Shown here one piece after another: positions 7,352 through 62,700 of a stretch of DNA of 64,000 bases. The stretch is from positions 1,178,001 through 1,242,000 of the forward strand of contig JAUPSS010000001.1 of the NCBI GenBank assembly GCA_040285825.1, written 5' to 3'. A program made the translations under genes and the position numbers. The notes under the pieces are model-generated. The model saw only the letters and a program-made list of their open reading frames with translations. It was not told the origin of the DNA and ran no database searches. The DNA is from Eukaryota sp. TZLM1-RC. Its lineage: Eukaryota > Protista > Metamonada: BaSk clade. Position 1 is the stretch's first letter, and each line of letters opens with the position of its first letter.

Positions 7352-7578
7352 ACTATTTTATTCTCAAAGATACGAAATGTTTATTTCATATTATGTCTGA
7401 AACAAATCTGTTTCAATTCTTCATTTGCAAATTCAATATAATAATGATAATACTGTTCAAATTTTTCAACACCATCAATTTTACATTTTTCGTGAATTGT
7501 GTTAATTATTAAATTCCATAAACTCTCAATTTCTTCCCACATAATAATTTTCAATCTTTCTTTTACATATTCGCTTTT

Positions 7579-8114
7579 GTTGTCTCCCTCTTTTTTGTTG
7601 ACTCTACTGAATGTTTTTCCATTGATAACATCATCCTTTGAAACATCAATTTGGAGACACATTAGTTCCCTTCCCACAAGCATTTTGTTTCTTGTTCAAT
7701 TTGACTTGACCATCAGCAGATGTTCGCATTTCTCTTCTCATGAAAAGCTTGCTGTCGCCTTTAAACCGCTCTTGGAGCTTCTTAGACGGCCGCTTAGTAA
7801 TGGAAGCAGAAAGTTTGTGATCTGTTTACTGAATTATTATGGGTTTGGATAGTTGTTCTTGAGATAGAATTCTCACCCTTCTTATTGGATGTTGTTGCTG
7901 GTTCAAATAATCGTATGTGTGATGAAAAGCTTGCTGTCGCCTTTAAAACGCTCTTGGAGCATGCCAGACGGCCGCTTAGTAATGTCAATCATGTACTGTT
8001 TGGTTTTGTGCTGGTTGTTCAGTGTCTTATTGGAGTATTGGCTACTAGTAGTGGAGTAGTTGGATGAGGAATTTCTGAATTGTCGTAGTATTTAGCTCAT
8101 TTAATAAAAACAGT
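7579..8114 (+). mobile_element. 5'-truncated copy of the short ORF-bearing retroposon
   Basis: 13-bp TSD CATATTCGCTTTT (7566-7578 / 8115-8127); AATAAA near the 3' end; homologous to 38719-39260; internal ~60-bp repeat at 7742-7802 / 7924-7984. Confidence 0.9.
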
Positions 8115-8167
8115 CATATTCGCTTTTTAACCAATTTTCTGATTTATTTTCACGATAATATTTTAAA

Positions 8168-18329: not shown

Positions 18330-21300
18330 GTGGAATGTAATATTCATCTTGTCCAAGTATTCAAAGAACAAAATGGTCATGATCAAAAATCATTATTATA
18401 TTTAATTAATAAATTTGGTTCTACTCGTAGATTTGTTAAAGTTATGAATTTCAACAAAACTGTTAAACTTGATAGAAATTTATATTTCTCGTTTGCTAGC
18501 ATCAATTGTCTTCGATCGTGTCAAAGACAAAGCTTCTACATTTTTGAATCCTCATCAATTTGGAATCAAAACAATTGATGGTGCTTCTGTTGCTGCTATT
18601 GCCTCTGATACCTTTTTTAATGCAGAGGAAAATAATTTTATTTTTAATCTCGACTTTAAAAATGCTTTTAATTCTGTAAAGCGAGAAGTAATTTTTGAAG
18701 TTATTAAATCTGATTTTCCTGAGCTATCGAGTTTTTTCTACCATTTTTATGGAAAAGAATCAGATTTAATTTTTAATTCATTTGGTCTTAAATCATCTTC
18801 TGGAGTGAAGCAGGGAGATCCTTTAGGCCCATTATTGTTTTGTTTAGCTATTCACAAAACTTTAAATATCATTAAGCAAAAATACCCTTCTATAAAAATA
18901 GTTGCTTATATGGATGATATATCCTTGATTGGTTCATTTGATTTACTAGAATTGGTTGCTCAAGAAATTGCCGATTCATATGAAAATATTGGGCTTCATC
19001 TTAATGCCAGCAAATGCCTTCTGATTGGCTCTTCTGCTCAAGACCTCGTGATAAACGATTCTATTGTCCCTTTTACTAATTATAGTAGTGATGCTTTTAA
19101 GTTCCTTGGTTGTTGGTTAGGAAATGTGCCTCAAATTCAGAATGAATTGCAAGTTATTTTGGAAAAAATGAAAATTGAACTTGATTCAATTTCTTCTTTA
19201 GATATAGAAAAGCATATTAAATTTTTCATGCTTAAAATTTGCTACACTGGGAGAATAACCCACATTTTGAGATCTTGTGCTCCTTCCATAGCATTAGATT
19301 TTTGTCGTTCTTTTAATTCATTGAGAACAGAATTTTTTTGCTGATTTATTGGATGTAGAACCAGGAATGTTGAAAAGCCATTTATTTTCTTCAGCAAATT
19401 TGGGTGGTATTGGTTTTACTAAATCTTCAATTTTGTGTCAATCAGCATTCTTGGGTGGTGGCAAAAATTTTATTTATGAATTTTCTCGTAGATTTCCTGA
19501 TGATTCTCATCTGTTAGTCCCCAATTGTAGTCCCTATTTGTATGAGTTATCTTGTGAACTTGAAAAATTACCGCCACAAATTTGGACCAAATGTTTTCCT
19601 CAATCAATTCAAGAAATTCCAAACCGATCTCTATTTAATTTACAGTTTTGCTGTAAAAAGCTTCAACAAAAATTGTCAAAGATTTTTGAAAGCTTGGATT
19701 TTGATGTTAGACTTGGCTTGGCCAAGAAAAAGAATCCCGCTTTTGCAAATCTTTTACAAGATATGTGTGACAGTACTTCTTCTGCCTTAGTAACAACAAT
19801 TCCACAAGTTTATGGTACTCTCTTATCCGATTCTGCTTGGACTCTGAATATGAGATTTCGTTCCTTTATCTGGCCTGATAATTTACCTCATAATTTAATT
19901 TGTAAATGTTCTCGAGAAATTACAACTACTCATTTGTTAAATTGTAAACATTTTATTACTTTTTAGAAGCAAGGTTCATGATGCTGTAAGAGACCAGTTA
20001 TATTGTATGTGTAAATCTCATAGAATTGAATCCTTCTTGGAACCTTTGTTGTCAAATCTGTTTGATGCTGAAAATGATTTTCATAAGAATAATAGAGGTG
20101 ATGTCATATTACCTGGATTAGATGGAAGCTTCATTTTATTGGATGTAATGTCTGTTGATCCTTGTAATGCCTCAAATGAAAGGCTTGTTAATTCTGAAAT
20201 TCATAATCCCCTTTCAAATGCTGAAAATTTTAAATTCAAAAAATACAATGAACCTTTGTCCAAATTGGCCAGTCTACAGCATGCAAAAATACAATTTGTA
20301 TCCATTTGTATTTTCCCTTTTTGGTTCACTTGCACCAACTGCTTTACGTTTTTTGGATGATTTTGAAATGATTGTAAAGAGAAGAACTGGCAGAAATTTC
20401 AACAGATTGTTTTGGCAAAAATAGAATTGTGTTTTCTATTTTTAAGGGGATGTTGAAGATGGTTTCTGATGCTTTGCTTTCTCTTGGATCTCACTATGAG
20501 AGAGTTGCATCTAGTGTTTTTGTTTTGGGAGAGATGGATTTTTTTAGATGTTGATTTATAGGTTTAGAATAAAATTAAATTTTAAAAAAAAATTTATATT
20601 TAAAACAAGAACCAACTGTTAAAATTGAAGGAAAAGATGATGATGGGTCATTTGGTTATAATGAATATAAATGTAATGTATTTTCAAAGACAATGGATGT
20701 TAATGAAATAAATGAATGGTTAACTGATAGAAAAAAAGATTATCGAGAATACACAGCTCAACAAGCTATTAAAAATAATAAATTACTTGTTAATACTGAA
20801 TATGGATGTTTTTCTTTTAAATCAACCACTAATTTTTCAAATAAGTTTTTTGACCAGAAAGATGAATTGATCAAAATACTTGACTTTTTCCAAAACAATA
20901 AGGAATGGTATGAGAAAAAGGGAATTCCACACACATTAGGAATTTTATTATATGGACCACCTACAACTGGTAAAACCTCAATTATCAAGTCTATTATGAA
21001 TTATTTAAAACGTGATGCTCATATAGTAAAACTAACAAAATATTCAAATCCTTATATAAATGAAACATTACACAATTCTAGATGTATTGTTGTATTCGAG
21101 GATATTGATTGTTTGGATGGAATAACCACTAATAGAAATGGAGAAATTCCAAAGAGGAACGAAAAAGAATTAACTGAATATAAGAATCAAAATACTAACA
21201 AAAAGGAAATCACACTTCAAGAAATATTAAATATATTAGATGGATTAGATGAGGGTAGCGATAGATTAATTATTATGACAACAAATCATCCTGAAAAATT

Positions 21301-22818: not shown

Positions 22819-25800
22819 ATGGAAAAACTAATTGCTGGATTTATATGTGGAAAAATAACAACACCAGAATTAATTAAAAATTATTCACCAATACCAGGTG
22901 GTATTAAATTTTCACTAATTGGTGGTGGTAGCATTTTAACAACATATGGTGATGCTATTGTATCGAGTGATTATCTGCTCAACGCAAATACCCAGAAGAA
23001 TTAAGAAGTTCTCGTTTGACTGCACTTGTCAAAAATTCAAAAATGGATGTTCGTCCTATTGCAGTCTCTGAGAGCTTACACAATATTTTTTCTGCGTGTT
23101 GCATAAACAGGTTCAATGAAAAAGCTAAAAAGATTTTATTACCCATTCAATATGGTATAAATACTACAGATGGAGTCTCTTCAGCGATTTTTGCTACTGA
23201 TGTCTTATTTCGTCAAAATGAATCCAATGTTTGTATGTCATTGGATTTTAGTGATGCTTTCAATTCACTAAGTCGTCGCAGTATCCATGGTGCTCTATTG
23301 CAATATATGCCGGAATTAATACCATATTTTCAATCAACTTATTGCACATATTCTAATTTACATTTTGGTAACAACATTTTGAGTTCATCAAGTGGCGTAA
23401 AGCAAGGAGATCCGTTAGGACCTCTTTTGTTTTGTTTGGCCATCCATCCTATTCTACTGCAAATTCAAGAGATGTTTCCTTCACTAAAAATGATTGCATA
23501 TATGGATGATTTTGTGCTTATTGGTGATTTAAAAATTGTGAAAAAAGCAACCGTATGTTTTAAAGAATTATTTACCAAAATTGGTCTCCGACTTAATTTA
23601 CTTAAATGTGTTTTGTTATCGAATTCTCCAGTTTCCACAATAATTGATGATATTGAAATTCAAGCCAAATTATATTCAATTGATGCTATTCGTCATTTGG
23701 GTTCGTTTTTAGGAAATAATGATGAAATTACCAAAAAATTGTTTGAAAAGTTGAACTCAATTTCTGACAAAATTGACCGAATGATGAATTTAGATATAAA
23801 AAACACATCAAATTTACCATTATAAGACTGTGTTTTAGTTCCAATTTTAATCATATATTTCGATCTACAAATCCTCTCGTCACTAGACCTTTGGCTCAAA
23901 AGTTTAATGAGTTACGTGCAAAAGTTCTGTCTCAATTACTGGGATGTAAAATGTTTCAAATTCCAGATCATGCTTACCTTAGTCCACATTATGGTGGTTT
24001 AGGGTGGACGAAGGCTTCTATTCTTACCTCGTGTGCTTTTGTTGGTGGATGCAGAAATGCAATCTTTGAGTTTTCCGAAAGATTTGCATATTGGGAAGAT
24101 TTATTGATGACAACGCAAAGTTCCACTGTTTTTGCATTAAATGAAGAAATTTCAAGAATTGATGTAGAAAAATGGGATCGATGTTTTCCCCAATCATTCA
24201 ATGGCAATATTCCAGAAAAAAATGTTTTAAATTTGAAGTACACTCTTCGAACATTACAGAAAAGATTGACTGGAATGTATGAAAAAGATCTTAATAATAA
24301 CATTTGCAGCTCGGCTGTTTTAAATCAAGATCTTCACTCATTGTTATTGGAAAAGGGTGTTTGTGAAAACAAGGCGTCAGATTCTTCACTTTTTGTAACC
24401 ATTGTACCACGAAGATTTGGATTGTGTGCCACTAATGAAGCATTTGTAATAAAAATGAGATTATATCTGAACATCCCCATTAACCAATTATTATCAAAAG
24501 AAAAATGTATTTGTTCGAATTCACCTCAACTCACTTTGCGCCATGCTCTAAATTGCTCTAAATTGATAACTTATCGTTCTTCATTACATGATGCTGTTAG
24601 AGACACTGTTTTCAATATGGCACAAACTGCAAGGATATCGTGTATCAAAGAGCCCCTGCTGAAAGAAAAACTTTCTCTGAATAATTTTGGTTCTGATGAT
24701 AGAGGTTATGTATACTGTGATTGGATTGATAATTCTGAAGCTATTGTTGACTTTGTCTCATGTAATGTTGCAAACGATACTTTGGTTCACAGAAGAAAAC
24801 TTAATCCTGTGGCTGCTCTGGATTTTAAAGCAAAAGAAAAACATAGAAAATATGATAAAGAAATTGAAGATGCAAATGTCGATAGAAATACACAGCTGGT
24901 TTTTATTGCTTTCCCATTTTCGATAAATGGAAGATTATCAGTTGAAGCAGAAACTTTTTTGGATGATTTCCAAAAAATGGTGAAAGAAAAAACAATGAAA
25001 AGATTTGATATTTTCTTATGGCGTTCACGGATTCAATTTGCCATTATGAATAGATTACCGCGGTTTTTCAATCGAATTAGAGAAGCTTTAGCTAGACAGC
25101 AAGCAAATCAAGATTTTGTAGAGGAAATCTTGGTTTAATGATAGTCGTCCCATTAGTTATGATTTAATTTAATCAAGTGTGCAAATTCAATAAATTGAGA
25201 TCGAGTGATAAAAATAAAGTAGTCAATATAATGGGTAGTTTGATTGGTAATGAAAAAGAAATGTCTAGAATTGAGTTTCAAAAAAATGTTTATAAAAACA
25301 AAATCGTAGAAGATGACAACTTACTTGAATTTACACAATACAATAGTAATGATTATGTGGCCATATTTTATTCAAATGATTTTGATGTTGAAATGTATAA
25401 GAATACATTACCAACCAAAACACAAACAGATATACAACCCATACAATATATTGATAGAGAATATGATTTTGGTGTATTATATATATACGAAAACATTGAA
25501 ATAGTGTTTAATTATCATGATGATTTGGTTGAATTAATTAAAAAATTAAAATTCCAAAAATTGATACATTTTGATTTATTAAATTCAATAACATATGATG
25601 ATGATAAGATTGTTTTATATAATTTTAATAACATTTTTAATATAAATGATCTTGATAAATGTTTTGAATATGATTATTTTGGATTTGATTACCATAACAA
25701 AACTTGTAAATTCCATCCAATCATTACAATAAAATGGATGAAGCACCATAGTATTAATGAAATTGGTGAGTTTATAACATCATTTAAAAATAGACAAGCA

Positions 25801-29950: not shown

Positions 29951-30356
29951 GTGGAAAGGGATGCTAGTTCTGGTTGTTGATTTCAGGAAGGTCAAACATG
30001 GAATTGTTCAAAAGCAAGTTTTATTTGCAAAAATGAATTTCATTGATCACCATTCCAATTCGTCCGCTTTCATCCTCAGAACACTGTGTGTCATCAGTTT
30101 CCCACATATATCGGAACATGGTGTTAACTTTTTTAAAAATCGTTCCAAATAGAAAACAAGGAATATCATCAAATACATCGATAGATTTATTGATTTCTAT
30201 CAACTGGACTAGAGCAAGAAAGGCAAATGGTTAAGAATGATCCAGATCTTTGTTTGTTTCTGAATTGGAAAACATGAAAGAAGGACCAGTCAGCAAACTT
30301 GGGCAGTATAATGACAAACAGAAAGAACAAGATTTGAAACACCCATAATTTATAGA

Positions 30357-30729
30357 TTCTGTTTTAGATTCAACATTGAGCACCTTCAGAGCTTCGTTAA
30401 TCCCCATGATGGCTCTTATCAAGGTAGGTGACGCTGGTAGGATTAGATTAATGGCCATTTGATCTTGACCAAGAGAGACTGTCACGTGACCAGTGACGTC
30501 GGCTTGTTTCTCCATAGCAAGAGCGTGTTCAAGTTGAAGATGATATTGTTTCACGAGTTGCTTGGCCTTCTCGCTGCCTTTATGTTCTATGAGTTCAGCA
30601 AGACAAGAAGAATGTTTGACGGCCTAAGAGAGACGTGATAGAGCATGATGCATCACCTTGGTTGATTTTTGGCTAGCAGCTTCTTGCTTGAGATACATTG
30701 CGTGTGGCCAGGCACGTTCTGCTTCTAAA
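30357..30729 (-). pseudogene. Captured SRP68 gene fragment
   Basis: Matches ~522-910 of the intact gene, with a 15-bp deletion. Confidence 0.9.
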
Positions 30730-32140
30730 ATTAGTTATCCACCCATTAGTTATGAATTAATTTAATTAAGTGTACATGTTCAATAAATATAATTCATTAA
30801 AATGATGTTGATTTATTGAATTCTACAAGTAATAATTATTTGAGAGACCTTGAAAATGCTTTTGATTTTTTGCCTCCTGAATTCTGGGTAAATGCTTTTC
30901 CGATAATGTGCAGGAAAAACCACCTAGAACACTAGTTAATGTGAGGTATTGTGGAAGAAAATTACAGCGCAAATTAACACTAATTTGTGAAGGCTTGGAT
31001 TTTAATGTTCGTCTTTGCTCGGCCAAAAAAAGATAATCCCGCTTTCGCAAATTTTTTATTAGATGCTCAAAATAGTTCCTCAGATCAGATAGAAGAAAGT
31101 GATGCGTGATAATTTAACCAACTTTCACCTGTTTCAGTTGGACCGGGAATAGTTTCTGCTTCGAAAATAGAACCTAAAAAACTTGGCAAAGAAGAACAGA
31201 CAGATCTTCAATTGGGGATGGAAATCTGGAAGAAATATCAAGAAAACCGCGAAACCAATGAAGCAAACTCTGTGAAGAAATAGACCAAGACGTCTGTACT
31301 ACATCTGAATCATTTCTTGGAAAAGCAGCATAAGCCGTAACACAACCATTGCCCATCTCATTCCTACAAATCTCCAACAGTGTTCGAGTCTTATCTAGAA
31401 TGAGTATAGATTAAAAACCTACCAACACCAGTGAAACCAATAAAGGGTACCACGTTTGAATGATACATGCTAAGCAGATCTTGGTTTCCTTGTAGTTCAT
31501 GAATACAATTGAGCAAGGAATGGTATGGAGACTTATCTTTGATGTATGGATAGTTGTAAAATGAATCGTTGGATATGGTGGCTGATGTTGATATTGGATC
31601 TGGTCTCTGTAGCATTATTTTACATCTAACGTCTGAACCACAGAGCAGAAGTAATTCAGAGTCATTTACAATTTCACCTCTTGGAGTTTCAGTGTACGAA
31701 AAGTACCGAGATACAATGTTTAATAGCTGTCTAAAAGATGAAGCAGTGGATGTGCCTGATGTTAGTGCAATCGCAAATCCAAAGTTTCTTAATGAGTTGA
31801 TAGAGAAGCTCAAGTTGTTCAGGGGTAATATTTACGAGTTCAACAGGAGTGTCGGGCATTTCACAATTAGATAACGAAGTAGAAAACGAGAAAAAAGTGA
31901 AATGATTCACAAACCTGATACTGAAAAGATATCTACTTGGCGTTTATTACAACAAAACAAGATCCCGTATCTGGCAAATGAAACAACCTTTTTGACAATG
32001 ACAACCTTGAAGACAAACACAATATCCTAAACGTAGTCATGAGTGCAAATTTATCAATCGAAGGATTGGCATTTTGATTTGGACAACATTCCAAAATCTC
32101 ATACAAACATGTTATCAATTATAAAAGTTGACAAAATTAC

Positions 32141-32830
32141 GTGAATTTTTTTAAGCCACAATTTCATTCCTTGCGTTCTGTTGCACGCTCTATCAACAAC
32201 TCCGTTTCTCCAAAACTGTTCTCACCTTCTCAAATTGGAACGACCGCAAAGACAGCTGCCAATGACAATTATGGTTTGAATGACAGAAAAATGTTTAAAA
32301 CACCTGCTTCTAACTCGCCAGTTAATGAATTAGAAATGATTGAAAAATGAAAACCAAAACCATTGGAAACTGGAAAAGTTCATTCACATAGATGTGGTAA
32401 ATGTCCTCAACCGGGACATAACGTAAAAACATGTCCCTTAATTAAACAAGAACAATCAAAAGCTCGTGCTCCATCTGCCGATTTGGATCTCCGTTGCCCA
32501 TAAATGATAACAAGATCAAGAACTTCCAGGAATATTTCCTTCAACTTCATCCATCGATTCTCCGAATAATAGGTGTATTATTTTACGGCTATGGAAATTT
32601 TTCTTGCTGAAAGATAAAACATTAATGTCATCAGAAGCAAAATTGCGTCCTTCTATTATGAAAAAAGAAAAAATTGTTTGCAAGTTATCTTTAAAAGAAC
32701 GCCATGGTTCCGCTAAGCAATGCCTGTTTTCAACTGAACTTGTTGAATGTGATGAAAATACTGCTCAACTTAATAAGCTCCATTCTTTTGAAGTTGTTAA
32801 ATACCCTGAACCTAATGGAAGCAGAATCCC
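32141..32830 (+). mobile_element. Deleted 5' part of a CRE-like element related to family A (repeated at 41632-42320)
   Basis: LRSVARSINNSVS shared with the family A N-terminus; CCHC knuckle CGKCPQPGHNVKTCP; QLNKLH. Confidence 0.75.
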
Positions 32831-32838
32831 CTACCTAA

Positions 32839-33151
32839 TTTTTTTTACCAAAATTTTAATTTTATTTAAAACCTATAAATCAACATCTAAAAAATCCATC
32901 TCTCCCAAAACAAAAACACTAGATGCAACTCTCTCATAGTGAGATCCAAGAGAAAGCAAAGCATCAGAAACCATCTTCAACATCCCCTTAAAAATAGAAA
33001 ACACAATTCTATTTTGCCAAAACAATCTGTTGAAATTTCTGCCAGTTTTTCTCTTTACAATCATTTCAAAATCATCCAAAAAACGTAAAGCAGTTGGTGC
33101 AAGTGAACCAAAAAGGGAAAATACAAATGGATACAAATTGTATTTTGCATG
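32839..33151 (-). mobile_element. Family A 3' end
   Basis: YNLYPFVFSLFGSLAP...FWQNRIVFSIFKG; AATAAA plus A tail. Confidence 0.9.
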
Positions 33152-36450: not shown

Positions 36451-38625
36451 TTAAACGATAATTTGAAGAGAAGGACGATTAGATGCTATTTGTCGAAGTA
36501 TGGATTTGGTTGGATTGATAATGTCGTTCCACCGAAGATCCAATATAGTCAGAGTGGAATTCCTCTCCAGAGCACGGGCGAGAGCACTAGCGCCTTCAGA
36601 GGTAATGTTGTTGTTCCTAAGAATCAATATAGTCAGAGAGGAATTCCTCTCCAGAGCACGGGCGAGAGCACTAGCGCCTTCATCGGTAATGTTGTTGTTC
36701 CCAAGACCCAATGTAGTCAGAGTGGAATTGCTCTCCAGAGCACGGGCGAGAGCAATAGCGCCTTCAGAGGTAATATTGTTGGACCCAAGATTCAATGTAG
36801 TCAGAGTGGAATTTCTCTCCAGAGCACGGGCGAGAGCACTAGCGCCTTCAGAGGTAAAGTTGTTGAGCTGAAGATACAATTTAGTCAGAGAGGAATTGCT
36901 CTCCAGAGCACGGGTAAGAGCACTAGCGCCTTCAGAGGTAATGTTGTTGGACCGAAGAACCAATTCAGTCAGAGTGCAATTGCTCTCCAATGCACGGGCG
37001 AGAGCACTAGCGCCTTCATCGGTAATGTTGTTGGTCCGAAGATCCAATGTAGTCAGAGTGAAATTGCTCTCCAATGCACGGGCGAGAGCACTAGCGCCTT
37101 CAGAGGTAATGTTGTTGGACCGAAGATCCAATTCAGTGATGGAACCATCAACCAAACCCTCAACACCCTTCTTCACCTTATCCCCCAATCCATTCCAATT
37201 TACATTCGACTTGATGTCTTCCAAAATTTCTTCCTTAGAAGGAGGATGATGATCATCGATATTGTTCAAAGGTTGATTACAATGGCACTTTCTCAACAAC
37301 GCTTCAAGGTCAGCAATTCTGCTTCCTAAATCAGAATTAGTTCTACTGAGTAGAGTATTTTGATTTTCCAATTCATCAATGGTAGATCTAAGGTTGGCAA
37401 TTTCGGCATTTTTCTGCGCAATAGTGGCATTGGAGGCTTGCTCCACAGCATTCTTTTCCTTTTCCAACCTGGCAATTCCAGCATCACGTTCCTCCAAAAT
37501 TCTGATGAGTTGTTGATTTATGGATTCAAGGTCGGTTATTTGTTTCTGAAGGGATTCAATTGAAGAGTTGGCTGGCTGCAGTTGGTATCTATCCAATTCT
37601 TCAATGTTTAATCTTGCATTTCGCACACCTTGAAGAACACTTTCAATTTTGGGACGGTTCTCAGCCTTAGGACTAACCATGCTTGCAATTAATGGCCTCC
37701 ATAATGTCGGTAGCTTATCCAAATTAATCAGTGCAGCACCATGGGAAGAAATTCGACTAACCTGTAGTTGAGCAGGATTCGTAACTACTTTTGAAGGATC
37801 TGTATTGGCTAAAATTCCCCAAAAGAGCACACCCAAAGAAAAGATGTCTACTTCAAAAGAAGCTCTACGTAATTCACCAAATAGAACTTCAGGAGCCATG
37901 TAGGCGACAGTTCCTAACATCATTTGTGTGAGGGTGACGTCACATGCCCTGGAGTCATCGAAATCGCCCAGTTTTGCAGATACAATAGCCTTGCCACGGA
38001 GTTTGAGTAACACATTTCCGGCAGAAACATCACGGTGAACAAAACCAGCTAGGTGAAAGCACGAAACAGCCTGGGATACTTCTTCGATAACGAGAAAAGC
38101 TTCCATTGGATTGAGGACTCGCTTTTGGTTAAAAAGATCTTGGAGTGAACATGAAAGACATTCTTGAACAATACCAGGGGGATCAAGAGTAACACCCAAA
38201 ACACTCACTACTTGAGTTGGGGAATTGAGCGTTCGATAAACTTGATAAACACGAGATACAACTTCACGGACAACTTCAACATCGTCTGCAGAAAAGTATG
38301 GTTGCTTCCAGATTACTTCTCTTTGATTCAGCTCCGCGGCGTGGATCGTGGCCCGAGGTGTCCGCTTTAGGATAGATAACTGTGCTAGATCAGCCGACTG
38401 GATAACATATGGCTTCAGCACATCCTGCATTAGATCTTCCAATTGATAGTTTCGTGTAACATCATGCAGAGACACTGCAGTTCTGCAGGAAGGACAGGTT
38501 TGATTCAAACCCAACCACTCCTCAATGCACGAAAGGCAAAAGGAATGGCCACACGGAAGAGCACGGGGCTCAAGGAGCAACCCTCTGTGTACCATACACA
38601 AGAAACTATCAGGATGATCAACCAT
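36451..38625 (-). CDS. RING finger - protein kinase - coiled coil - RI-type LRR protein
   Basis: RING (LPCGHSFCLSC...CPSCR); kinase VHRDVSAGN, AKLGDFD, GTVAYMAPE, DIFSLG; coiled coil; ~7-8 28-aa LRRs (LTTLDLRTNNITDEGASALARALESN). Intact 724 aa. Confidence 0.92.
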   Translation of the reverse strand: MVDHPDSFLCMVHRGLLLEPRALPCGHSFCLSCIEEWLGLNQTCPSCRTAVSLHDVTRNYQLEDLMQDVLKPYVIQSADLAQLSILKRTPRATIHAAELNQREVIWKQPYFSADDVEVVREVVSRVYQVYRTLNSPTQVVSVLGVTLDPPGIVQECLSCSLQDLFNQKRVLNPMEAFLVIEEVSQAVSCFHLAGFVHRDVSAGNVLLKLRGKAIVSAKLGDFDDSRACDVTLTQMMLGTVAYMAPEVLFGELRRASFEVDIFSLGVLFWGILANTDPSKVVTNPAQLQVSRISSHGAALINLDKLPTLWRPLIASMVSPKAENRPKIESVLQGVRNARLNIEELDRYQLQPANSSIESLQKQITDLESINQQLIRILEERDAGIARLEKEKNAVEQASNATIAQKNAEIANLRSTIDELENQNTLLSRTNSDLGSRIADLEALLRKCHCNQPLNNIDDHHPPSKEEILEDIKSNVNWNGLGDKVKKGVEGLVDGSITELDLRSNNITSEGASALARALESNFTLTTLDLRTNNITDEGASALARALESNCTLTELVLRSNNITSEGASALTRALESNSSLTKLYLQLNNFTSEGASALARALERNSTLTTLNLGSNNITSEGAIALARALESNSTLTTLGLGNNNITDEGASALARALERNSSLTILILRNNNITSEGASALARALERNSTLTILDLRWNDIINPTKSILRQIASNRPSLQIIV
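36500..37140. repeat. 84-bp coding tandem repeat (LRRs)
   Basis: CTCCAGAGCACGGGCGAGAGCACTAGCGCCTTC recurs every 84 bp. Confidence 0.9.
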
Positions 38626-38718
38626 GGCAGCGAGGAAAATGAAACAATTTGTTGGCTCTTCGCTTGTGATTGAAACCGAGATTCAAAACCACATCAAAAT
38701 CTTATTTTCCTTACAGAT

Positions 38719-39398
38719 TTTTTTTTCTCGTAAATTTTTTTATTAAATTAGCTAAATACTACGACAATTCAGAAATTCCTCATCCAACTACTCCACCACT
38801 AGTAGTCAATACTCCAAAAAGACACTGAACAACCAGCACACAACCAAAAAGTACATGATTGACATTACTAAGCGGCCGTCTGAGATGCTCCAAGAGCGTT
38901 TTAAAGGCGACAGCAAGCTTTTCATCACACATACGATAGTTAGAACCAGCAACAACATCCAATAAGAAGAGTGAGAATTTGATCTCAAGAACAACTAACC
39001 AACCCTTCAGTAAACAGATCACAAACTTTCTACTTCCATTACTAAGCGGCCGTCTAAGAAGCTCCAAGAGCGATTTAATGGCGACAGCAAGCTTTTCATG
39101 AGAAGAGAAATGCAAACATCTGCTGATGGTCAAGTCAAATTGTACAAAAAACAAAATGCTTGTGAGAAGGGAACTAATTTGTCTCCAAATTGATGTTTCG
39201 AAGGATGATGTTATCAGTGGAAGAACATTCAGTAGAGTCAACAAAGAAGGGGGAGACAACGCAGAGCAATATGGAATAATTGTTGAGAAAACAATAGGAG
39301 GGCCTGGACCGTGATAAGGGAGGTTTTCAACAATCATGATGGAGAGGAAGGAAGTTCGACGCGGAAGGCGGGGGGGGGGGAAGACAAAGTTGTTAAAG
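38719..39398 (-). mobile_element. Apparently full-length 680-bp ORF-bearing retroposon
   Basis: 12-bp TSD TTCCTTACAGAT (38707-38718 / 39399-39410); AATAAA plus short A tail on the minus strand; second copy at 7579-8114. Confidence 0.9.
38780..39337 (-). CDS. 185-aa hydrophobic orphan ORF carried by the retroposon
   Basis: ATG 39337 (MIVENLP...), ~60 nt from the element's 5' end; TGA ~35 nt before AATAAA; in-frame repeat EKLAVAxKxLLExLRRPLSN twice. The track's longer start is a GTG outside the TSD. Confidence 0.5.
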   Translation of the reverse strand: MIVENLPYHGPGPPIVFSTIIPYCSALSPPSLLTLLNVLPLITSSFETSIWRQISSLLTSILFFVQFDLTISRCLHFSSHEKLAVAIKSLLELLRRPLSNGSRKFVICLLKGWLVVLEIKFSLFLLDVVAGSNYRMCDEKLAVAFKTLLEHLRRPLSNVNHVLFGCVLVVQCLFGVLTTSGGVVG

Positions 39399-39469
39399 TT
39401 CCTTACAGATGGTGTCACTTTTTCCTGCTGTCACTGAAAGCACTTGTGCATAAATATGTTGGAATTAAT

Positions 39470-42400
39470 AAACATGGAATTGTTCAAAAGCAAGTTTTAT
39501 TTGCAAAAATGAATTTCATTGATCACCATTCCAATTCGTCCGCTTTCATCCTCAGAACACTGTGTGTCATCAGTTTCCCACATATATCGGAACATGGTGT
39601 TAACTTTTTTAAAAATCGTTCCAAATAGAAAACAAGGAATATCATCAAATACATCGATAGATTTATTGATTTCTATCAACTGGACTAGAGCAAGAAAGGC
39701 AAATGGTTAAGAATGATCCAGATCTTTGTTTGTTTCTGAATTGGAAAACATGAAAGAAGGACCAGTCAGCAAACTTGGGCAGTATAATGACAAACAGAAA
39801 GAACAAGATTTGAAACACCCATAATTTATAGATTCTGTTTTAGATTCTAAATTATTAATACTAACATTGAGCACCTTCAGAGCTTCGTTAATCCCCATGA
39901 TGGCTCTTATCAGGGTAGGTGACGCTGGTAGGATTAGATTAATGGCCATTTGATCTTGACCAAGAGAGACTGTCACGTGACCAGTGACGTCGGCTTGTTT
40001 CTCCATAGCAAGAGCGTGTTCAAGTTGAAGATGATATTGTTTCACGAGTTGCTTGGCCTTCTCGCTGCCTTTATGTTCTATGAGTTCAGCAAGACAAGAA
40101 GAATGTTTGACGGCCTAAGAGAGACGTGATAGAGCATGATGCATCACCTTGGTTGATTTTTGGCTAGCAGCTTCTTGCTTGAGATACATTGCGTGTGGCC
40201 AGGCACGTTCTGCTTCTAAAATTAGTTATCCATGCATTAGTTATGAATTAATTTAATTAAGTGTGCATGTTCAATAAATATAATTTATTAAAATGATGTT
40301 GATTTATTGAATTCTACAAGTAATAATTATTTGAGAGACCTTGAAAATGCTTTTGATTTTTTGCCTCCTGAATTCTGGGTAAATGCTTTTCCGATAATGT
40401 GCAGGAAAAACCACCTAGAACACTAGTTAATGTGAGGTATTGTGGAAGAAAATTACAGCGCAAATTAACACTAATTTGTGAAGGCTTGGATTTCAATGTT
40501 CGTCTTTGCTCGGCCAAAAAAAGATAATCCCGCTTTCGCAAATTTTTTATTAGATGCTCAAAATAGTTCCTCAGATCAGATAGAAGAAAGTGATGCGTGA
40601 TAATTTAACCAACTTTCACCTGTTTCAGTTGGACCGGGAATAGTTTCTGCTTCGAAAATAGAACCTAAAAAACTTGGCAAAGAAGAACAGACAGATCTTC
40701 AATTGGGGATGGAAATCTGGAAGAAATATCAAGAAAACCGCGAAACCAATGAAGCAAACTCTGTGAAGAAATAGACCAAGACGTCTGTACTACATCTGAA
40801 TCATTTCTTGGAAAAGCAGCATAAGCCGTAACACAACCATTGCCCATCTCATTCCTACAAATCTCCAACAGTGTTCGAGTCTTATCTAGAATGAGTATAG
40901 ATTAAAAACCTACCAACACCAGTGAAACCAATAAAGGGTACCACGTTTGAATGATACATGCTAAGCAGATCTTGGTTTCCTTGTAGTTCATGAATACAAT
41001 TGAGCAAGGAATGGTATGGAGACTTATCTTTGATGTATGGATAGTTGTAAAATGAATCGTTGGATATGGTGGCTGATGTTGATATTGGATCTGGTCTCTG
41101 TAGCATTATTTTACATCTAACGTCTGAACCACAGAGCAGAAGTAATTCAGAGTCATTTACAATTTCACCTCTTGGAGTTTCAGTTTACGAAAAGTACCGA
41201 GATACAATGTTTAATAGCTGTCTAAAAGATGAAGCAGTGGATGTGCCTGATGTTAGTGCAATCGCAAATCCAAAGTTTCTTAATGAGTTGATAGAGAAGC
41301 TCAAGTTGTTCAGGGGTAATATTTACGAGTTCAACAGGAGTGTCGGGCATTTCACAATTAGATAACGAAGTAGAAAACGAGAAAAAAGTGAAATGATTCA
41401 CAAACCTGATACTGAAAAGATATCTACTTGGCGTTTATTACAACAAAACAAGATCCCGTATCTGGCAAATGAAACAACCTTTTTGACAATGACAACCTTG
41501 AAGACAAACACAATATCCTAAACGTAGTCATGAGTGCAAATTTATCAATCGAAGGATTGGCATTTTGATTTGGACAACATTCCAAAATCTCATACAAACA
41601 TGTTATCAATTATAAAAGTTGACAAAATTACGTGAATTTTTTTAAGCCACAATTTCATTCCTTGCGTTCTGTTGCACGCTCTATCAACAACTCCGTTTCT
41701 CCAAAACTGTTCTCACCTTCTCAAATTGGAACGACCGCAAAGACAGCTGCCAATGACAATTATGGTTTGAATGACAGAAAAATGTTTAAAACACCTGCTT
41801 CTAACTCGCCAGTTAATGAATTAGAAATGATTGAAAAATGAAAACCAAAACCATTGGAAACTGGAAAAGTTCATTCACATAGATGTGGTAAATGTCCTCA
41901 ACCGGGACATAACGTTAAAACATGTCCCTTAATTAAACAAGAACAATCAAAAGCTCGTGCTCCATCTGCCGATTTGGATCTCCGTTGCCCATAAATGATA
42001 ACAAGATCAAGAACTTCCAGGAAAATTTCCTTCAACTTCATCCATCGATTCTCCGAATAATAGGTGTATTATTTTACGGCTATGGAAATTTTTCTTGCTG
42101 AAAGATAAAACATTAATGTCATCAGAAGCAAAATTGCGTCCTTCTATTATGAAAAAAGAAAAAATTGTTTGCAAGTTATCTTTAAAAGAATGCCATGGTT
42201 CCGCTAAGCAATGCCTGTTTTCAACTGAACTTGTTGAATGTGATGAAAATACTGCTCAACTTAATAAGCTCCATTCTTTTGAAGTTGTTAAATACCCTGA
42301 ACCTAATGGAAGCAGAATCCCCTACCTAATTTTTTTTACCAAAATTTTAATTTTATTTAAAACCTATAAATCAACATCTAAAAAATCCATCTCTCCCAAA

Positions 42401-42641
42401 AAAAAACACTAGATGCAACTCTCCCATAGTGAGATCCATGAGAGAGCAAAGTGTCAGAAACCATCTTCAACATCCCCTTAAAAATTGAAAACACAATTCT
42501 GTTGTGCCGAAACAATCTGTTGAAATTTCTGCCAGTTCTTCTCTTTACAATCATTTCAAAATCATCCAAAAAACGTAAAGCAGTTGGTGCCAGTGAACCA
42601 AAAAGGGAAAATGCAAATGGATACAAATTGTATTTTGCATG
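39470..42641. repeat. 3.2-kb mosaic segmental duplication, copy 2 (SRP68 fragment at ~39833-40220)
   Basis: Near-identical to 29994-33151; retains the 15 bp deleted in copy 1. Confidence 0.95.
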
Positions 42642-45600
42642 CTGTAGACTGGCCAATTTGGACAAAGGTTCATTGTATTTTTTGAGTTTGAAATTTTCAG
42701 CATTTGAAATTGAATTATGAATTTCAGAATTTACTAGCCTTTCATTTGAGGCATTACAAAAATCAACAGACATTACATCTTATAAAATGAAACTTCCATT
42801 TAAACCAGGTAATATGACATCAGCTCTATTATTCTTATGAAAATCATCTTCAGCATCAAACAGACTTGACAACAGAGGTTCCAAGAAAGATTCAATTCTA
42901 TGAAATTTACACATACAATATAACTGGTCTCTTGCAGCATCATGAACCTTGTTTCTGAAAGTAATAAAATGTTTACAATTTAACAAATGAGTAGTTGTAA
43001 TTTCTCGAGAACATTTACAAATAAAATTATGAGATAAATTATCAGGCCAGATAAAGGAACGAAATCTCATATTCAGAGTTCAAGCAGACTCGGTTAAGAG
43101 AGTACCATAAACTTGGGGAATTGTTGTTACTTAGGCAGAAGAAGTACTGTCACACATATCTTGTAAAAGATTTGCAAAAGCGGGATTCTTATTTGGCCAA
43201 GCCAGGTCTAACATCAAATTTCAAGCATTCAAAAATCTTTGACAATTTTTGTTGAAGCTTTTTACAGCAAAACTGTAAATTAAATAGAGATCGGTTTGGA
43301 ATTTCTTGAATTGATTGAGGAAAACATTTGGTCCAAATTTGTGGCGGCAATTTTCCAAGTTCACAAGATAACTCATACAAATAGGGACTACAATTGGGGA
43401 CTAACAGATGAGAATCATCAGGAAATCTACGAGAAAATTCATAAATAAAATTTTTGCCACCGCCCAAGAATGCTGATTGACACAAAATTGAAGATTTAGT
43501 AAATCCAATACCCCCCAAATTTGCTGAAGAAAATAAGTAACTTTTCAACATTCCTGGTTCTACATCCAATAAATCAGCAAAAAATTCTGTTCTCAATGAA
43601 TTGAATGAACGACAAAAATCTAATGCTATGGAAGGAGCACAAGATCTCAAAATGTGGATTATTCTCCCAGTGTAGCAAAGTTTAAGCATGAAAAATTTAA
43701 TTTGCTTTTCTATATCTAAAGAAGAAATTGAATCAAGTTCAATTTTCATTTTTTCCAAAATAACTTGCAATTCATTCTGAATTTGAGGCACGTTTCCTAA
43801 CCAACAACCAAGGAACTTAAAAGCATCACTACTATAATTAGTAAAAGGGATAATAAAAATCGTTTATCACGAGATCTTGAGCAGAAAAGCCAATCAGAAG
43901 GCATTTGCTCGCATTAAGATGAAGCCCAATATTTTCATATGAATCGGCAATTTCTTGAGCAACCAATTCTAGTAAATCAAATGAACCAATCAAGGATATA
44001 TCATCCATATAAGCAACTATTTTTAAAGATGGGTATTTTTGCTTAATGATATTTAAAGTTTTGTGAATAGCTAAACAAAACAATAATGGGCCTAAAGGAT
44101 CTCCCTGCTTCACTCCAGAAGATGATTCAAGAGCAAATGAATTAAAAACTAAATCTGATTCTTTCCCATAAAAATGGTAGAAAAAACTCGATAGCTCAGG
44201 AAAATCAGTTTCAATAACTTCAAAAATTGCTTCTCGTTTTACAGAATTAAAAGCATTGTTGAAGTCGAGATTAAAAATAAAATTATTTTCCTCTGCATTA
44301 AAAAAGGTATAAGAGGCAATAGCAGCAACAGAAGCACCATCAATTGTTTTGATTCCAAATTGATGAGGATTCAAAAATGTAGAAGCTTTGTCTTTGACAC
44401 GATCGAAGACAATTGATGCCAGCAAACGAGAAAGAGATTCACCAACAGCAATTGGGCGTATTCCATCAGGTTTGATTCCGTTTCCAGGCTTTACCAAAGC
44501 AATCAGACGTGCTGCGAGTAATTCAAATGGAGGATTAATTTTCAAAACAATTAATTGTTGAAAATAATGGGCTAGATCATCAGCAATTTCGGGAACACTG
44601 GAACACGCTATTTTTAAGAGATCAAAAGAAATTCCAGATGGGCCTGCAGCTTTCCCCTTTGGTAATTTTTGAATAGCTTTAAGAACTTCAATTGCAGTAA
44701 TAGGATTTTCAATCCAAAAAGGACACACATCAGGCTTGCTGCACTTGAAATTTTCTTGAGGATGCAACTTTTGAAGTTTTTCAAGGGTATCAGAGTTTAC
44801 ATCAGCCAAAGAAGAGGAAAACAAGGACTACTTTGCGGCACCATAACGACCACGTAAGCACAATTTTCGGCAAATTTTTGATTTTAAAATTTTTCTATTT
44901 CCAAATTTCTTCTTAATACAATTTTAATTTTTTCTAGCAAAATATTTCCAGAAGGATGAAATATTCCACTTATTATTTTTCAATTCAGAAGTAAGATTTT
45001 TCATTTCCATTGAGAAGGGGATTGTGCTGGCGGGACTTATTTCTACTGGGATCCGGATCGGGGGTCTTACGGTATCAACGGCGTTACAATTCGTACAAAA
45101 CAGAAGTTTTCGACCATTTCTTGAATCTGCAACATCTTTTTTGCAAAATGGACAACAAAAATTACTGTTTTCAGAAGGGGAAGAAGAGGGAACACTAGAA
45201 GCATTTAACTGTTGATCGTCAGAAACATTATTTTCAGCACTTTTCACAACGGCAACAGCTGGAACAGAACATTCGAAAATTTGTTGAGCAGATTTTAATT
45301 CAAATTCTCTTTTTGGTTTTTCAGGGCACGTTCTCGAATTGTGACCACTGATACCACAAATCGAACATTTTTTAGAACCTTTTAATGGCAGTGGTTTTAT
45401 TTTTTCAGTACTTTCTATTTTGTCAATTTGTGAGTTAAAAGTAGAAATAGACTTTTGACTTTTTGCAGTTTCAGCTGGAGAAAACAAATTTCGAGAAACG
45501 GAGTTGTTAATAGAACGCGCAACGGAACGTAAGGAACGTAATTTTGGTTTTTGTGTGTTTTTTCTGGTACAATGATCAGTTTTTGAATGAAAATTTTTTT

Positions 45601-45807
45601 GAGATGAATTTCGAGCATAGCTTGCATTGTGGGGAGAGTGGTTAAGTGAAAGAGATGAGCTTGTTCTGACTGGTAGAATCTTCGCTTGGGCGTTCCAATC
45701 AGTATCAGAGTCACTATCAGCCAAAGGCATCGTTTTGACAGAGAAACTTTACGACTTTGACGCCTTGACAGAAAGTGAAATATGAAAGGGTTGACTAAGG
45801 GAGGGAG
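42330..45807 (-). mobile_element. Probably full-length, inactivated CRE-like non-LTR retrotransposon, family A
   Basis: Single long broken ORF from ATG 45730: CCHC knuckle CSICGISGHNSRTCP, C4 motif CPFC...CTNC, KAAGPSG, IRPIAVGE, RT, zinc motif, RLE. Stops at 43189, ~43131 and 42780 recur in the copy at 63-64 kb, so they look like real mutations. No TSD found. Confidence 0.92.
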
Positions 45808-45829
45808 AAAAAAAAAGATCCAATGAATA

Positions 45830-45946
45830 ACAGAAGCTTTAGCTAGACAGCAAGCAGATCAAGATTTTGTAGATCAAATCGTGGTATAATGGTATTCGTC
45901 CCGTTAGTTATGAATTAATTTAATTGAGTGTACATGTTCAATAAAT
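45830..45946 (+). mobile_element. Family B 3' end remnant
   Basis: Matches ~25081-25195. Confidence 0.8.
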
Positions 45947-46929
45947 ATTTATTTTACTCATCAATTGCGCAAGCTGCTCATGTGGTTTTGGAAATTGATT
46001 TCTTTCTTCAAGGCCACTCTTGATTGTAAAAAAGAGAGAAGAGTGCATAATTTTGTGCTGGCGAGGTCTATTACAGATATGAATGACCCATTGTATCAAT
46101 ATTGAATTAAATTGAACTACAAAAACATTCTATAAAATACAATCGATGAAATTGACTGCTCCACGAATGCTTCAGAAACATCCTGAATTGGTTGTTTTCT
46201 CGCCATCTCATTCTCATTTTCGATGTCAAAACCGAGACAATGTATCAATGATGGTGAAATGAATTCGTCAAAACTATAAAACGATATCAGATTGAAATCA
46301 CTATTAACATTTTCAAAGGTCTACGTTGACAACAAGGAATCCAGCCCCATTACTGTAATGAACCATAATTGTGACATTATTGGTATAGGGTTATTGTTAG
46401 TAAGACAAAAATTTAAGTCAAATCAGCGTTAATAAGCAGAAATCAGAATGTTACACTGATGACATATGTCTACTTTTGGCGAAATTGAGTAGAAACAAAT
46501 AAAAGCAGAAAACACAATGGAATCGAAAATCTCCGCATTGTGATGTCTAGAGACCAAATTGGTTATGTAGGGGTAACATTCGCCAGAAATGAGCACTGAT
46601 CGATCCACCAACATAATTCAATAGCTGTTGAAAGTGAGAAGCATAGAAAAACAAAAGCATATCACAGCAGGTTTATTCTAAGACAACACATCATATGATA
46701 CAGTATCAGTATTATTGGAAATAGCCATGTGCATTGGAAAGCAAAATACCTAAATGGATCAAAAACATAGATGGACTTTGGTAAGTCCAACTTTATAAGT
46801 GCCTGCAACATTCAGTTGAGATGTTAAGAAAATGATGATTTATTTTCTATTCATTTTACAAAAGCCTAAAGCCATCAGTTATTCTGTTCTACCATAAAAA
46901 CACAATGATTTATGTACAAAACTCGAAAT

Positions 46930-47814: not shown

Positions 47815-47874
47815 CGAGGAACAAAATATCGAAATTTCAATTCTGTGATTTTCATTTCAAATGAACATTTGTTT

Positions 47875-48135
47875 TTCGTTCTGACTATGGAAGAGATATT
47901 TACTGTGATTGGATTGATAATTCTGAAGCTATTGTTGACTTTGTCTCATGTTATGTTGCAAATGATATTTTGAAAACTTAATCCTGTGACTGCTCTTGAT
48001 TTTAAAGCAAAAGAGAAACATAGAAAATATGATGAAGATATTGAACAAGCTAATGTTGGTAGAAATGCACAGCTGGTTTGTATTGCGGTCCCATTTTCAA
48101 TAAACGGATGATTATAAGTTGAAGCAGAAACTTTG
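47875..48135 (+). mobile_element. Family B RLE fragment
   Basis: Homologous to ~24690-24955. Confidence 0.8.
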
Positions 48136-59769: not shown

Positions 59770-62700
59770 GCTGATTTAAGTTTTTCCTTATCACACAATC
59801 CTGAAAATGAATTTATAATTGAGATTCCCGATAACATTTCTGACAAAGAAGATCAAAAAGATGACAAAAAAATGTGTTTTTTTGTCAAAAGCTTCTTGCT
59901 GTCAATGATTCTGGTCGACCTTTACTGTTTTGTGATTCCTGTGTTGCTGCTGATCAGCTATGTTGTCCCAATCGTGTTCCTGCTCAGCTTAGTCCGTTGG
60001 CTTCGATACCTTTTGCTGTTGTTCTTCGTGCTTTTTACTGAAAATCTCCGTAAAAGGATTATGGGATGTCACACCGATTTGGAAATTTTTTTCTGAAAAA
60101 AAGATAAAAACTTTTTATCGAAAAAAATCAAATTTAAAAAAATATGTTTTTTCGAAGAAAAAAACTTAGTAAAAAAATTAGCTTTAAAAGAACGTTTTGG
60201 ATCTGCAAAAACAATGTTTATTTTCTTCTGATTTAGCTGAATGTAATGAAAGCACATTGTTCCAATTGAATCATCTTCATCCAGAAGAAAATTTTCATTG
60301 TCCTAAACCAGATTCAGTTGATTATTGGCTGCAAAAATTCTGTCAATGCTTCAGAAGTATTGAAACTGATTCAGCAAATGCCTACTGGAAAAAGCTCCTG
60401 GGCCGTCTTTGTTAAATTTCGACATGTTAAAATCAGCTGTTGGTCAGTGTCCTGAAATTGCTGATGATCTTGTTCTTTTTTTCAACAATCTTCTTACGTT
60501 AAAAATTAAAGTCCCTTTTTGAGATGACCAGTGCTCGCTTAGTTGCCCTCAAAAAAAGTCAATCCAAAATCCGTCCAATTGCAATTGGAGAATCGTTTTC
60601 AAGAATTCTTGTGTCTCTTGTTTTCAATAGAATTGGGAAAAAGCCAAGGAATTTTTTTCAGTCCATTTCAATTTAAAAATCAAGACAATTGATGGTGCTT
60701 CTTCTGCTGCTCTTTCGTCGGATGTGTTTTTTTAATTCTAGTGATTCTAATTACATCTTCAATTTAGATTTTTAAGAATGCTTTCAATTCTGAATAATTT
60801 TTGGTTCTGATGATAGAGGTGATGTATACTGTGATTGGATTGATAATTCTGAAACTATTGTTGACTTTGTCTCATGTAATGTTGCAAATGATACTTTGGT
60901 TCACAGAAGAAAAACTTAATCCTGTGGCTGCTCTGGATTTTAAAGCAAAAGAAAAACATAGAAAATATGATAAAAGAAATTGAAGAGGCAAATGTCGATA
61001 GAAATACACAGCTGGTTTTTTATTGCTTTCCCATTTTCGATAAACGGAAGATTATCAGTTGAAGCAGAAACTTTTTTTGGATGACTTCCAAATAATGGTG
61101 CAAGAAAAAAACAATGAAAAGATTTGATATTTTTTTATGGCGTTCACGGATTCAATTTGCCATTATTAATAGATTACCGCGGTTTTTCAATCGAATAAGA
61201 GAAGCTTTAGCTAGACAGCAAGCAGATCAAGATTTTTGTAGAGGAAATCTTGATTCAATGATAGTCGTCCCATTAGTATTGAGTTAATTTAATTAAGTGT
61301 GCAAATTCAATAAATATATTCTGTACCTCGTTCTTCCATTTTACCTTTGCTGCAAAAGCATTTTCCTGAAGTTGAGCCTTTTTCTATTCATTTTATGGAA
61401 AATCATCCACATTGGTCTATGAAAACTTTGACCTGCTTTTCGTCTTCAGGTGTTAAACAAGGTGATCCACTTGGTCCTTTTTTTCTTTTTGTCTGGCAAT
61501 TCATCCATTAATGTGCGAATTGAAAGAAAAAAATTCCCAGAAATAGATATTGTAGCATATATGGATGACATTTCTGTAATTGCTCCGATTTCAATTCTCA
61601 AACAAATAGCAACTTTTATTCAACAGCGTTATGAAGATATTGGTCTCTCATTGAATATCTCCAAATGTTTGATTATTGGCCATGAACCAATTGATTTTTT
61701 TCATTAACGAGGTCAATGTCCCCTTTATCAATTATGATCAGTCTGGTTTTCGTTTTTGGGTTGTTATCTCGGAAATATTGAAGAAGTCAAAGGTCAACTT
61801 TTTGACTCTGTTGACTCAATTTGGAAATGAATTAGAGTCAATAGAAAATTTAAATATTGGGAAACATTTGAAATTCTGTTTCCTAAAAATTTGTTATTCT
61901 GAAAAATTTACTCATATTTTGAGATTAACATCATTGAAGTTTTGTCGAATTTTTAATGTACAAAGAACCAATTTATTTAGTAAAATTATTGGAAATTGAT
62001 GCATCTCAGTTACGAAGCCACATTTTTTTGTGGTACAAATTTTTGGTGGTGTTGATTTTCATAAGTCAAGCTACCTTTGTAAAGCTGCCTTTATCGAAGG
62101 TGGTAAAAATTTTATTTATGAATTTGTGAATCGTTTTCCTGAAAAAAATTGGTCTCATTGAAAATTGTGGCAGCACTTATCTTATTTCTTTGCAACAGGA
62201 AATTGAAACTCTTTCACCCAATATTTGGTCTCAATGTTTCCCCTCTGGTATTGTGGAACTCCCTCCAAGAAGCTTGCTCTCCTTACCACTGACTTTTTGC
62301 AAAATTGCAGAAAAAAATCTTGAAAGTTTTTAGAAAACTGGGCTATATTGTACGTCTTAGCTTGGCTAAAGAAAAAAATCCCGTTTTTGCAAACTTCTTG
62401 ATTGATCTTGAAGACAGTTGCTCAAGTTGCCTAATTTCCCAAATTCCCAACATTTGTGGCCTTCTACTTAATGATTACCAATGGACCACTGCAATTGGAA
62501 TGAGATGTTTTCTATGGCCTTGTACTTTACCAAATGATTTAATTTGTCGCTGCAAGAGTGTTGTTACGCTTTCCCATATTTTAAACTGTCAGTATTTCAT
62601 AACTTATGGCTCAATTGTTCATGACTCAGTTCGTGATCAATTATATGCCATGTGCAAAAAGTTTCAATATAGAGGCATTTATTGAGCCACTAGTACGTAA

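Follow-up and report, generated by a model that had tools for sequence, protein, structure and literature searches.

A family of short, mRNA-like retroposons with a neutrally evolving open reading frame in the metamonad Skoliomonas litria

Introduction

The Sadhu elements of Arabidopsis are retroposons of less than 1 kb that lack a reverse transcriptase (RT), end in poly(A), are flanked by target-site duplications (TSDs), show 5′ truncation and fall into subfamilies (Rangwala and Richards, 2010; PMC2848041). They have no head of the RNA polymerase III (Pol III) type, and LINEs are presumed to mobilize them by target-primed reverse transcription (PMC2848041). The retroposon of Skoliomonas litria described here is closest in kind to Sadhu, being likewise non-autonomous, shorter than 1 kb and RT-less, with TSDs, 5′ truncation, subfamilies and no Pol III head. 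It differs in that 82% of the element is open reading frame (ORF), and in that the LINEs resident beside it are apparently R2/CRE-like, with a candidate C-terminal motif of the restriction-like nuclease type. We know of no long open frame in Sadhu, whose presumed partners are the APE-type LINEs of plants.

Other RT-less elements share some of these features. Classic SINEs derive from tRNA, 7SL or 5S RNA and carry a tail that matches a LINE. The S. litria element resembles them in being short, RT-less, apparently LINE-dependent and divided into subfamilies in a master-gene pattern, but it has neither a tRNA, 7SL or 5S head nor, in a search of 142 kb, a LINE-derived tail, and shows instead an mRNA-like AATAAA with a downstream cleavage site. 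HeT-A of Drosophila and HAL1 (half-L1) of mammals are RT-less retroposons that keep an ORF, a gag or ORF1 homologue under selection. The S. litria element is likewise RT-less, polyadenylated, ORF-bearing and probably dependent on the RT of another element, whereas its ORF lacks similarity to LINE proteins and evolves neutrally. In the RIME/ingi and NARTc/L1Tc systems of trypanosomes and in R2 SIDE elements, internal-deletion derivatives share both ends with their LINE. They are likewise short and non-autonomous, and pair with protist LINEs or with R2-type elements; in contrast, the S. litria element has only a generic T-run with a CT-rich start, and AATAAA with a short A tail, in common with the resident LINE. 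Finally, processed pseudogenes display the same integration hallmarks and an mRNA-like template, but the S. litria element has no parent in protein searches, several sources, and nested subfamilies that indicate long-lasting self-propagation.

Isolate TZLM1-RC is the type isolate of S. litria, a free-living haloalkaliphilic metamonad whose genome papers do not treat transposons. The original prediction held that a short element, inserted twice within a 64-kb window (the whole stretch of DNA analyzed), is moved in trans by a CRE-like RT and carries its own cargo protein. Our analysis makes it likely that both inserts are copies of a ~665–680-bp non-autonomous, mRNA-like, LINE-dependent retroposon family of S. 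litria, in which the ORF is an unselected relic. The family adds an undescribed group of mobile elements for a newly sequenced, deep-branching free-living metamonad.

Two Insertions in the Window

The full-length copy (copy A, winA) is a 681-bp insert at 38719–39399 on the minus strand and belongs to the youngest subfamily. A perfect 12-bp TSD (TTCCTTACAGAT) flanks it at 38707–38718, on the 3′ side of the element, and at 39400–39411, on the 5′ side, exactly at the edges of homology. The mRNA architecture that had been proposed for this copy is present throughout: a pyrimidine-rich 5′ leader of ~62 nt (39338–39399), an ORF of 185 codons plus TGA (38780–39337 in the ORF listing; ATG at 39337–39335, TGA at 38782–38780), and a 3′ end (38719–38744) in which AATAAA (38739–38744) is followed by a 12-nt spacer (AAAATTTACGAG) and an A8 tail (38719–38726), the terminus of the insert reading ...AATAAAAAAATTTACGAG and then A8. 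The same tail is found in copies L001 and L007, and other subfamilies carry different spacers. The conserved core of the leader begins at CTTCCCCCC, and in copy A the 16 nt that precede it are copy-specific and unrelated to what stands there in the other full-length copies, namely T7–T10, or ATTTTTTTAAAT in L007. As a correction to the proposed element length of 680 bp, the body that all copies share measures ~665 nt, and the stretch upstream of CTTCCCCC varies by copy. Within the ORF, the predicted in-frame repeat proved to be a 63-nt direct repeat, with unit 1 (encoding EKLAVAIKSLLELLRRPLSN) at 39037–39099 and unit 2 at 38863–38925, both on the minus strand. The units are 94% identical and their spacing is exactly 174 nt (58 codons).

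Two features lie close to copy A. An intact gene for a 724-aa protein with RING, protein kinase, coiled-coil and LRR_6 segments (36451–38625, minus strand) begins 93 bp 3′ of the copy A tail in the same orientation, and the insertion occupies the expected promoter position of this gene. On the other side, a 3.2-kb segmental duplication (29994–33151 and 39470–42641, 98.8% identical) starts 59 bp past the TSD and takes in the 3′ end of a LINE.

The second copy (copy B, winB) is a 536-bp insert at 7579–8114 on the plus strand, with a perfect 13-bp TSD (CATATTCGCTTTT) at 7566–7578 on its 5′ side and at 8115–8127 on its 3′ side. As had been noted from the sequence, it is 5′-truncated, lacking the first ~140 nt of the element, and frameshifted, its reading frame being broken by an 8-bp insertion at 7834–7841. 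AATAAA stands at 8103–8108 and the copy ends in ...AATAAAAACAGT with no A run. Two insertions with TSDs of their own and an AATAAA each are therefore borne out, and the A-rich end claimed for both copies holds for copy A (A8) but not for copy B. Over 549 nt the two copies share 92.35% identity, and their differences comprise 20 replacement and 8 silent changes (dN/dS 0.78), in line with an early caveat about an excess of replacements. Within the 64-kb window no further sequence resembles them. Copy B is flanked by a thymidylate kinase and NT5C fusion ORF (6012–7001, minus strand) and by an intact-looking MULE/SWIM transposase ORF (8211–10058, plus strand).

The Family in the Genome

A word-based search with the ORF against 5.8 billion proteins matched four protein clusters, all of them “hypothetical protein P9112_...” of Eukaryota sp. 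TZLM1-RC, with 12 distinct sequences and 13 GenBank gene models. Twelve loci (L001–L012) were taken from assembly GCA_040285825.1 and, together with the two window copies, represent 13 independent insertions, L004 and L005 being one insertion that a segmental duplication of 3,294 bp has doubled, flanks included and unchanged. At least 13 “hypothetical proteins” of this genome are retroposon copies and should not be counted as genes.

The copies bear the marks of retroposition. Clear TSDs flank seven of them (copy A, 12 bp; copy B, 13 bp; L001, 14 bp; L004, 12 bp; L007, 10 bp; L011, 11 bp; L012, 10–13 bp), with no apparent insertion-site motif among these seven, and A7–A10 tails are present in seven copies. 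Truncation confined to the 5′ side, with the AATAAA end kept, is seen in copy B, L004, L006 and L010, which identifies the AATAAA strand as the RNA strand. Full-length copies share a common body from CTTCCCCCC onward, preceded by a variable T7–T10.

Pairwise identity within the family ranges from 89% to 99%. The maximum-likelihood (ML) tree is ladder-like, with four nested subfamilies and support of 99–100 for the nested sets, and runs from the old copies L009, L010 and L011 through {L004, L012, copy B}, L003 and {L002, L008} to the young set {L001, L007, L006, copy A}. Terminal branches measure 0.04–0.06 in L009, L010 and L011 and 0.003–0.011 in the young set, and this shrinkage from 0.06 to 0.003 has, as judged from the tree, the pattern of an evolving source lineage. 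Copy A, which is 98–99% identical to L001, L006 and L007 and has a private branch length of 0.008, is among the youngest insertions; copy B, 98.1% identical to L004, belongs to an older subfamily.

Retroposon insertions serve as age markers. At L004/L005 (JAUPSS010000007.1, about 1,187,000–1,190,400) the insertion occurs twice, 3,294 bp apart, with the same flanks and TSD, and the tandem segmental duplication at this site postdates the insertion.

Evolution of the Open Reading Frame

The 185-codon frame is not due to chance. Its stop-free run extends over 205 codons, a length reached in none of 20,000 dinucleotide-preserving shuffles (99.9th percentile, 165 codons). The pattern of substitution within the frame is nevertheless that of sequence without coding constraint. 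Variant alleles are distributed over the three codon positions as 53:55:47, and alleles common to at least two copies, taken as changes that arose in source lineages, as 13:14:12. For the ORF frame the pooled Nei-Gojobori pN/pS comes to 0.77, vs. 0.72 and 0.59 in the two off-frames, so that constraint on the ORF frame does not exceed that on frames that do not code. Variation is uniform along the element, and the 63-nt repeats are not spared. Constraint in any other frame of either strand was also considered, the antisense frames being protein-like by eye, and is ruled out by the equal variation at the three codon positions.

A neutral null was built by placing each observed change (same from-base, same to-base) at random on the ORF. 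Among all changes, 41 were synonymous (42.5 expected), 111 were replacements (106.3 expected) and 2 created stops (5.2 expected; P = 0.10). Shared changes alone gave 12 synonymous (11.1 expected) and 26 replacement changes (25.8 expected). Arithmetic from the same null indicates that the 38 shared changes rule out an omega below about 0.45 for the source lineage, and that all 152 changes rule out an omega below about 0.74. The evolution of the ORF is indistinguishable from neutral. Five of the 13 copies are disabled, L010 and L012 by stops and L009, L011 and copy B by frameshifts; the frame of 185 codons is intact in the other eight, a proportion that is uninformative because 12 of the 13 copies were recovered via annotated protein models. 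The stop codon itself has changed from TGA to TAA in the old subfamily and is still a stop.

Pfam gave no match for the protein encoded by the ORF or for the three longest ORFs of the antisense strand. When 1.84 billion representative proteins were searched with a profile built from ten members, two members of the family were the only hits, and the ESM Atlas held no look-alikes. The product shows no similarity to the LINE proteins, and tblastn matched only the family's own copies. Structure prediction, which had been proposed as a check, yielded a poor AlphaFold2 model (mean pLDDT 48.8), in which every residue scored below 70 and no confident fold emerged. The product is hydrophobic (GRAVY 0.74) with two span-like segments, but the strand is T-rich (38% T), and a hydrophobic translation is also expected from this composition.

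These observations bear directly on the idea, central to the original prediction and the source of its special appeal, that the element carries its own cargo protein, taken here to be functional, under selection and, at 185 aa, a small membrane protein. Eight of 13 intact frames, the two membrane-span-like segments, the GRAVY of 0.74, a codon-usage score for the ORF frame above those of the other frames, and the existence of 13 GenBank gene models could all be read in its favor. However, variation is equal across codon positions, the ratio of synonymous to replacement changes is that of the neutral null for private and shared changes alike, and pN/pS is not below that of the off-frames. Additionally, no homologue exists among the proteins searched (5.8 billion proteins, 1.84 billion representatives and the ESM Atlas), not one residue of the model reaches a pLDDT of 70, and the codon-usage score of 0.02 falls below that of every real gene tested (0.07–0.25). 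A selected cargo is thus very unlikely. The ratio dN/dS across copies lies near 1, the value that the original prediction had itself linked to a non-coding element, and its coding-cargo part does not survive the test.

Selection might instead act on the openness of the frame and leave the amino-acid sequence free, if a source RNA serves well as a template only when ribosomes read it almost as far as its 3′ end; in this way the RNA might come to lie on ribosomes beside nascent LINE protein, or be spared nonsense-mediated decay. Some selection of this kind is possible, as the shortage of stops and the switch from TGA to TAA at the same position in the old subfamily leave room for it. The ORF is non-random and fills 82% of the element, only 2 stops arose where 5.2 were expected and none fell among the 38 shared changes, and the 174-nt spacing of the repeats and the 3-nt and 174-nt deletions of L011 are all in frame. 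The stop deficit is, however, not significant (P = 0.10) and is biased by the recovery of copies through gene models, about 1.1 stops would be expected among the shared changes so that their absence carries no weight, and three of the five ORF indels are out of frame. We regard maintenance of the open frame in itself as unlikely. Slightly more doubtful still is a “translated SINE,” whose frame would be kept open because translation delivers the RNA to the machinery of the LINE or shields it against decay. If true, it would amount to a hijack of LINE cis-preference unlike the SRP9/14 docking that Alu uses. We favor the reading of the ORF as an unselected relic.

Source Loci and RNA Type

Between AATAAA and the A tail lies a spacer that is specific to each lineage, reading TTTACGAG, GTCC, TGTTTAC, TTGGTTCTTT, TATCTAATAT or CCGTATAGTA. 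The variants do not nest within a single downstream sequence and imply at least five source loci that differ in their downstream DNA. The spacers accordingly point to several source loci, not to one parent gene. In the simplest reading, the cleavage site of each source transcript lay a few nucleotides out in the DNA flanking that source, and daughter copies became sources in turn. No TSD-less parent gene, and no orthologue or paralogue outside the family, was found among 5.8 billion proteins and 1.84 billion representatives, where all hits were the family's own copies.

A different origin for the same structures would be the production of ordinary processed pseudogenes by one highly expressed, fast-evolving host gene that is unannotated or lost. 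Such a gene would account for the mRNA architecture, the AATAAA, the A tails, the TSDs and the 5′ truncations, and a ladder-like tree is also expected from a single evolving master. It does not account for the five or more non-nested spacers, which need several source loci, and all copies that could be checked are themselves retrocopies. Changes in the source lineage are neutral, so the “parent” would not be a functional coding gene, and the protein searches revealed no paralogue or orthologue outside the family. This origin is highly improbable in our judgment. With 13 independent copies, TSDs, 5′ truncations, nested subfamilies and several sources, a self-propagating retroposon family is the better description, and the original view, which set the element apart from both classic SINEs and one-off processed pseudogenes, stands.

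ARAGORN and Rfam detected no tRNA and no Rfam family in the whole 64-kb window, and the sense strand contains T5–T6 runs at which Pol III would terminate. When the last 87 nt were compared by short-word BLAST with 142 kb of sequence containing several LINE families, only AT-rich 11–15-mers matched. Folding of the whole element gave z = +0.27, indicating no special RNA structure. The element has no RT or endonuclease of its own, its single 185-aa ORF being without a Pfam domain. The predicted absence of an RT, of Pol III boxes and of a LINE-derived tail agrees with these results. A classic SINE was considered and is ruled out by the missing tRNA or Rfam head, the T5–T6 runs, and the lack of a tail shared with LINEs in the 142 kb.

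A Candidate LINE Partner and a Model for Mobilization

The candidate partner is a 3.5-kb, apparently R2/CRE-like non-LTR retrotransposon at 42328–45815 on the minus strand, recognized by an RVT_1 match with the RT at 43838–44824. It starts with T9 and CTCCCTCCC and ends in AATAAA, 14 nt and A8. A second, 5′-truncated copy of the same LINE family lies at 18485–20594 on the plus strand, with a 9–12-bp TSD, (A)ATTTATATTT, and an A9 tail; it is 95.5% identical to the first. The LINE copies are 95–98% identical to one another, which suggests an age similar to that of the retroposon. Among solved structures, R2 proteins are the best match of the LINE RT (E = 1.8e-10), with L1 ORF2p close behind (6e-9). 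Downstream of the RT in the second copy, the motifs CxC-x9-H-x4-C and RGDV-x13-LDV were seen by eye, with no match to a Pfam nuclease model, and these resemble the restriction-like nuclease of R2 and CRE elements.

The ends of the LINE and of the retroposon are built alike. At all three available LINE 5′ ends (window 45807–45815, minus strand; L006:2965, minus strand; L010:5507, plus strand) T7–T9 is followed by CTCCCTCCCTTAGTCAACCC. The related string T7 plus CT[CT]CCC occurs in the 142 kb only at retroposon 5′ ends. The T-run start common to both may reflect a shared initiator or promoter, or may be a signature of how 5′ junctions form. The TSDs of the two kinds of element fall in the same range (9–12 bp for the LINE, 10–14 bp for the retroposon), which upholds the proposed match in TSD length to the local CRE-like elements, and the tail architecture matches as well. 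The layout of the ends is the same, but the retroposon and the LINE have no alignable sequence in common. Based on this shared architecture, an R2/CRE-like LINE is a plausible partner. Counting against the partnership, R2-type enzymes are usually thought to recognize their own 3′ UTR. If the partnership is real, R2/CRE-like LINEs that end in poly(A) may mobilize an unrelated, mRNA-like RNA in trans, an activity that is little documented for that class of enzyme.

Most likely, a source copy gives rise to a short mRNA-like RNA, probably through transcription by RNA polymerase II, starting in or just upstream of the T-run and the CTTCCCCCC leader. This RNA would be cleaved and polyadenylated about 12–18 nt past its own AATAAA. 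Target-primed reverse transcription by the RT and endonuclease of the resident R2/CRE-like LINEs would then insert a copy of it at a staggered break in the chromosome. The outcome would be target duplications of 10–14 bp, A tails of short length and, in many cases, loss of the 5′ end. Daughter copies could in turn become sources. The 185-codon ORF would be a leftover of the founding transcript that the source lineage has not yet lost to decay, without being maintained for its protein.

Rearrangements and Repeats Beside the Copies

Several sites show further rearrangement. L011 (2982–3427), an old copy, has lost exactly the 174 nt between its two 63-nt repeats, presumably through recombination or slippage between the repeat units. 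At L006:2940–3010, a retroposon 5′ end and a LINE 5′ end meet head to head, 8 bp apart. In L008 (2860–3700), a stretch of ~60–90 bp (AAAAACCGAGGTAATCTATT...) is repeated on both flanks of the copy, either because the element inserted into a tandem repeat or because the duplication is unusually long. Finally, a ~127-bp repeat (window 25069–25195, 45821–45948 and 61188–61317; also L001, L008 and L012) recurs beside copies of the LINE and the retroposon, as does a ~270-bp companion of it (window 47873–48134 and others), and these two repeats probably belong to another retroelement family.
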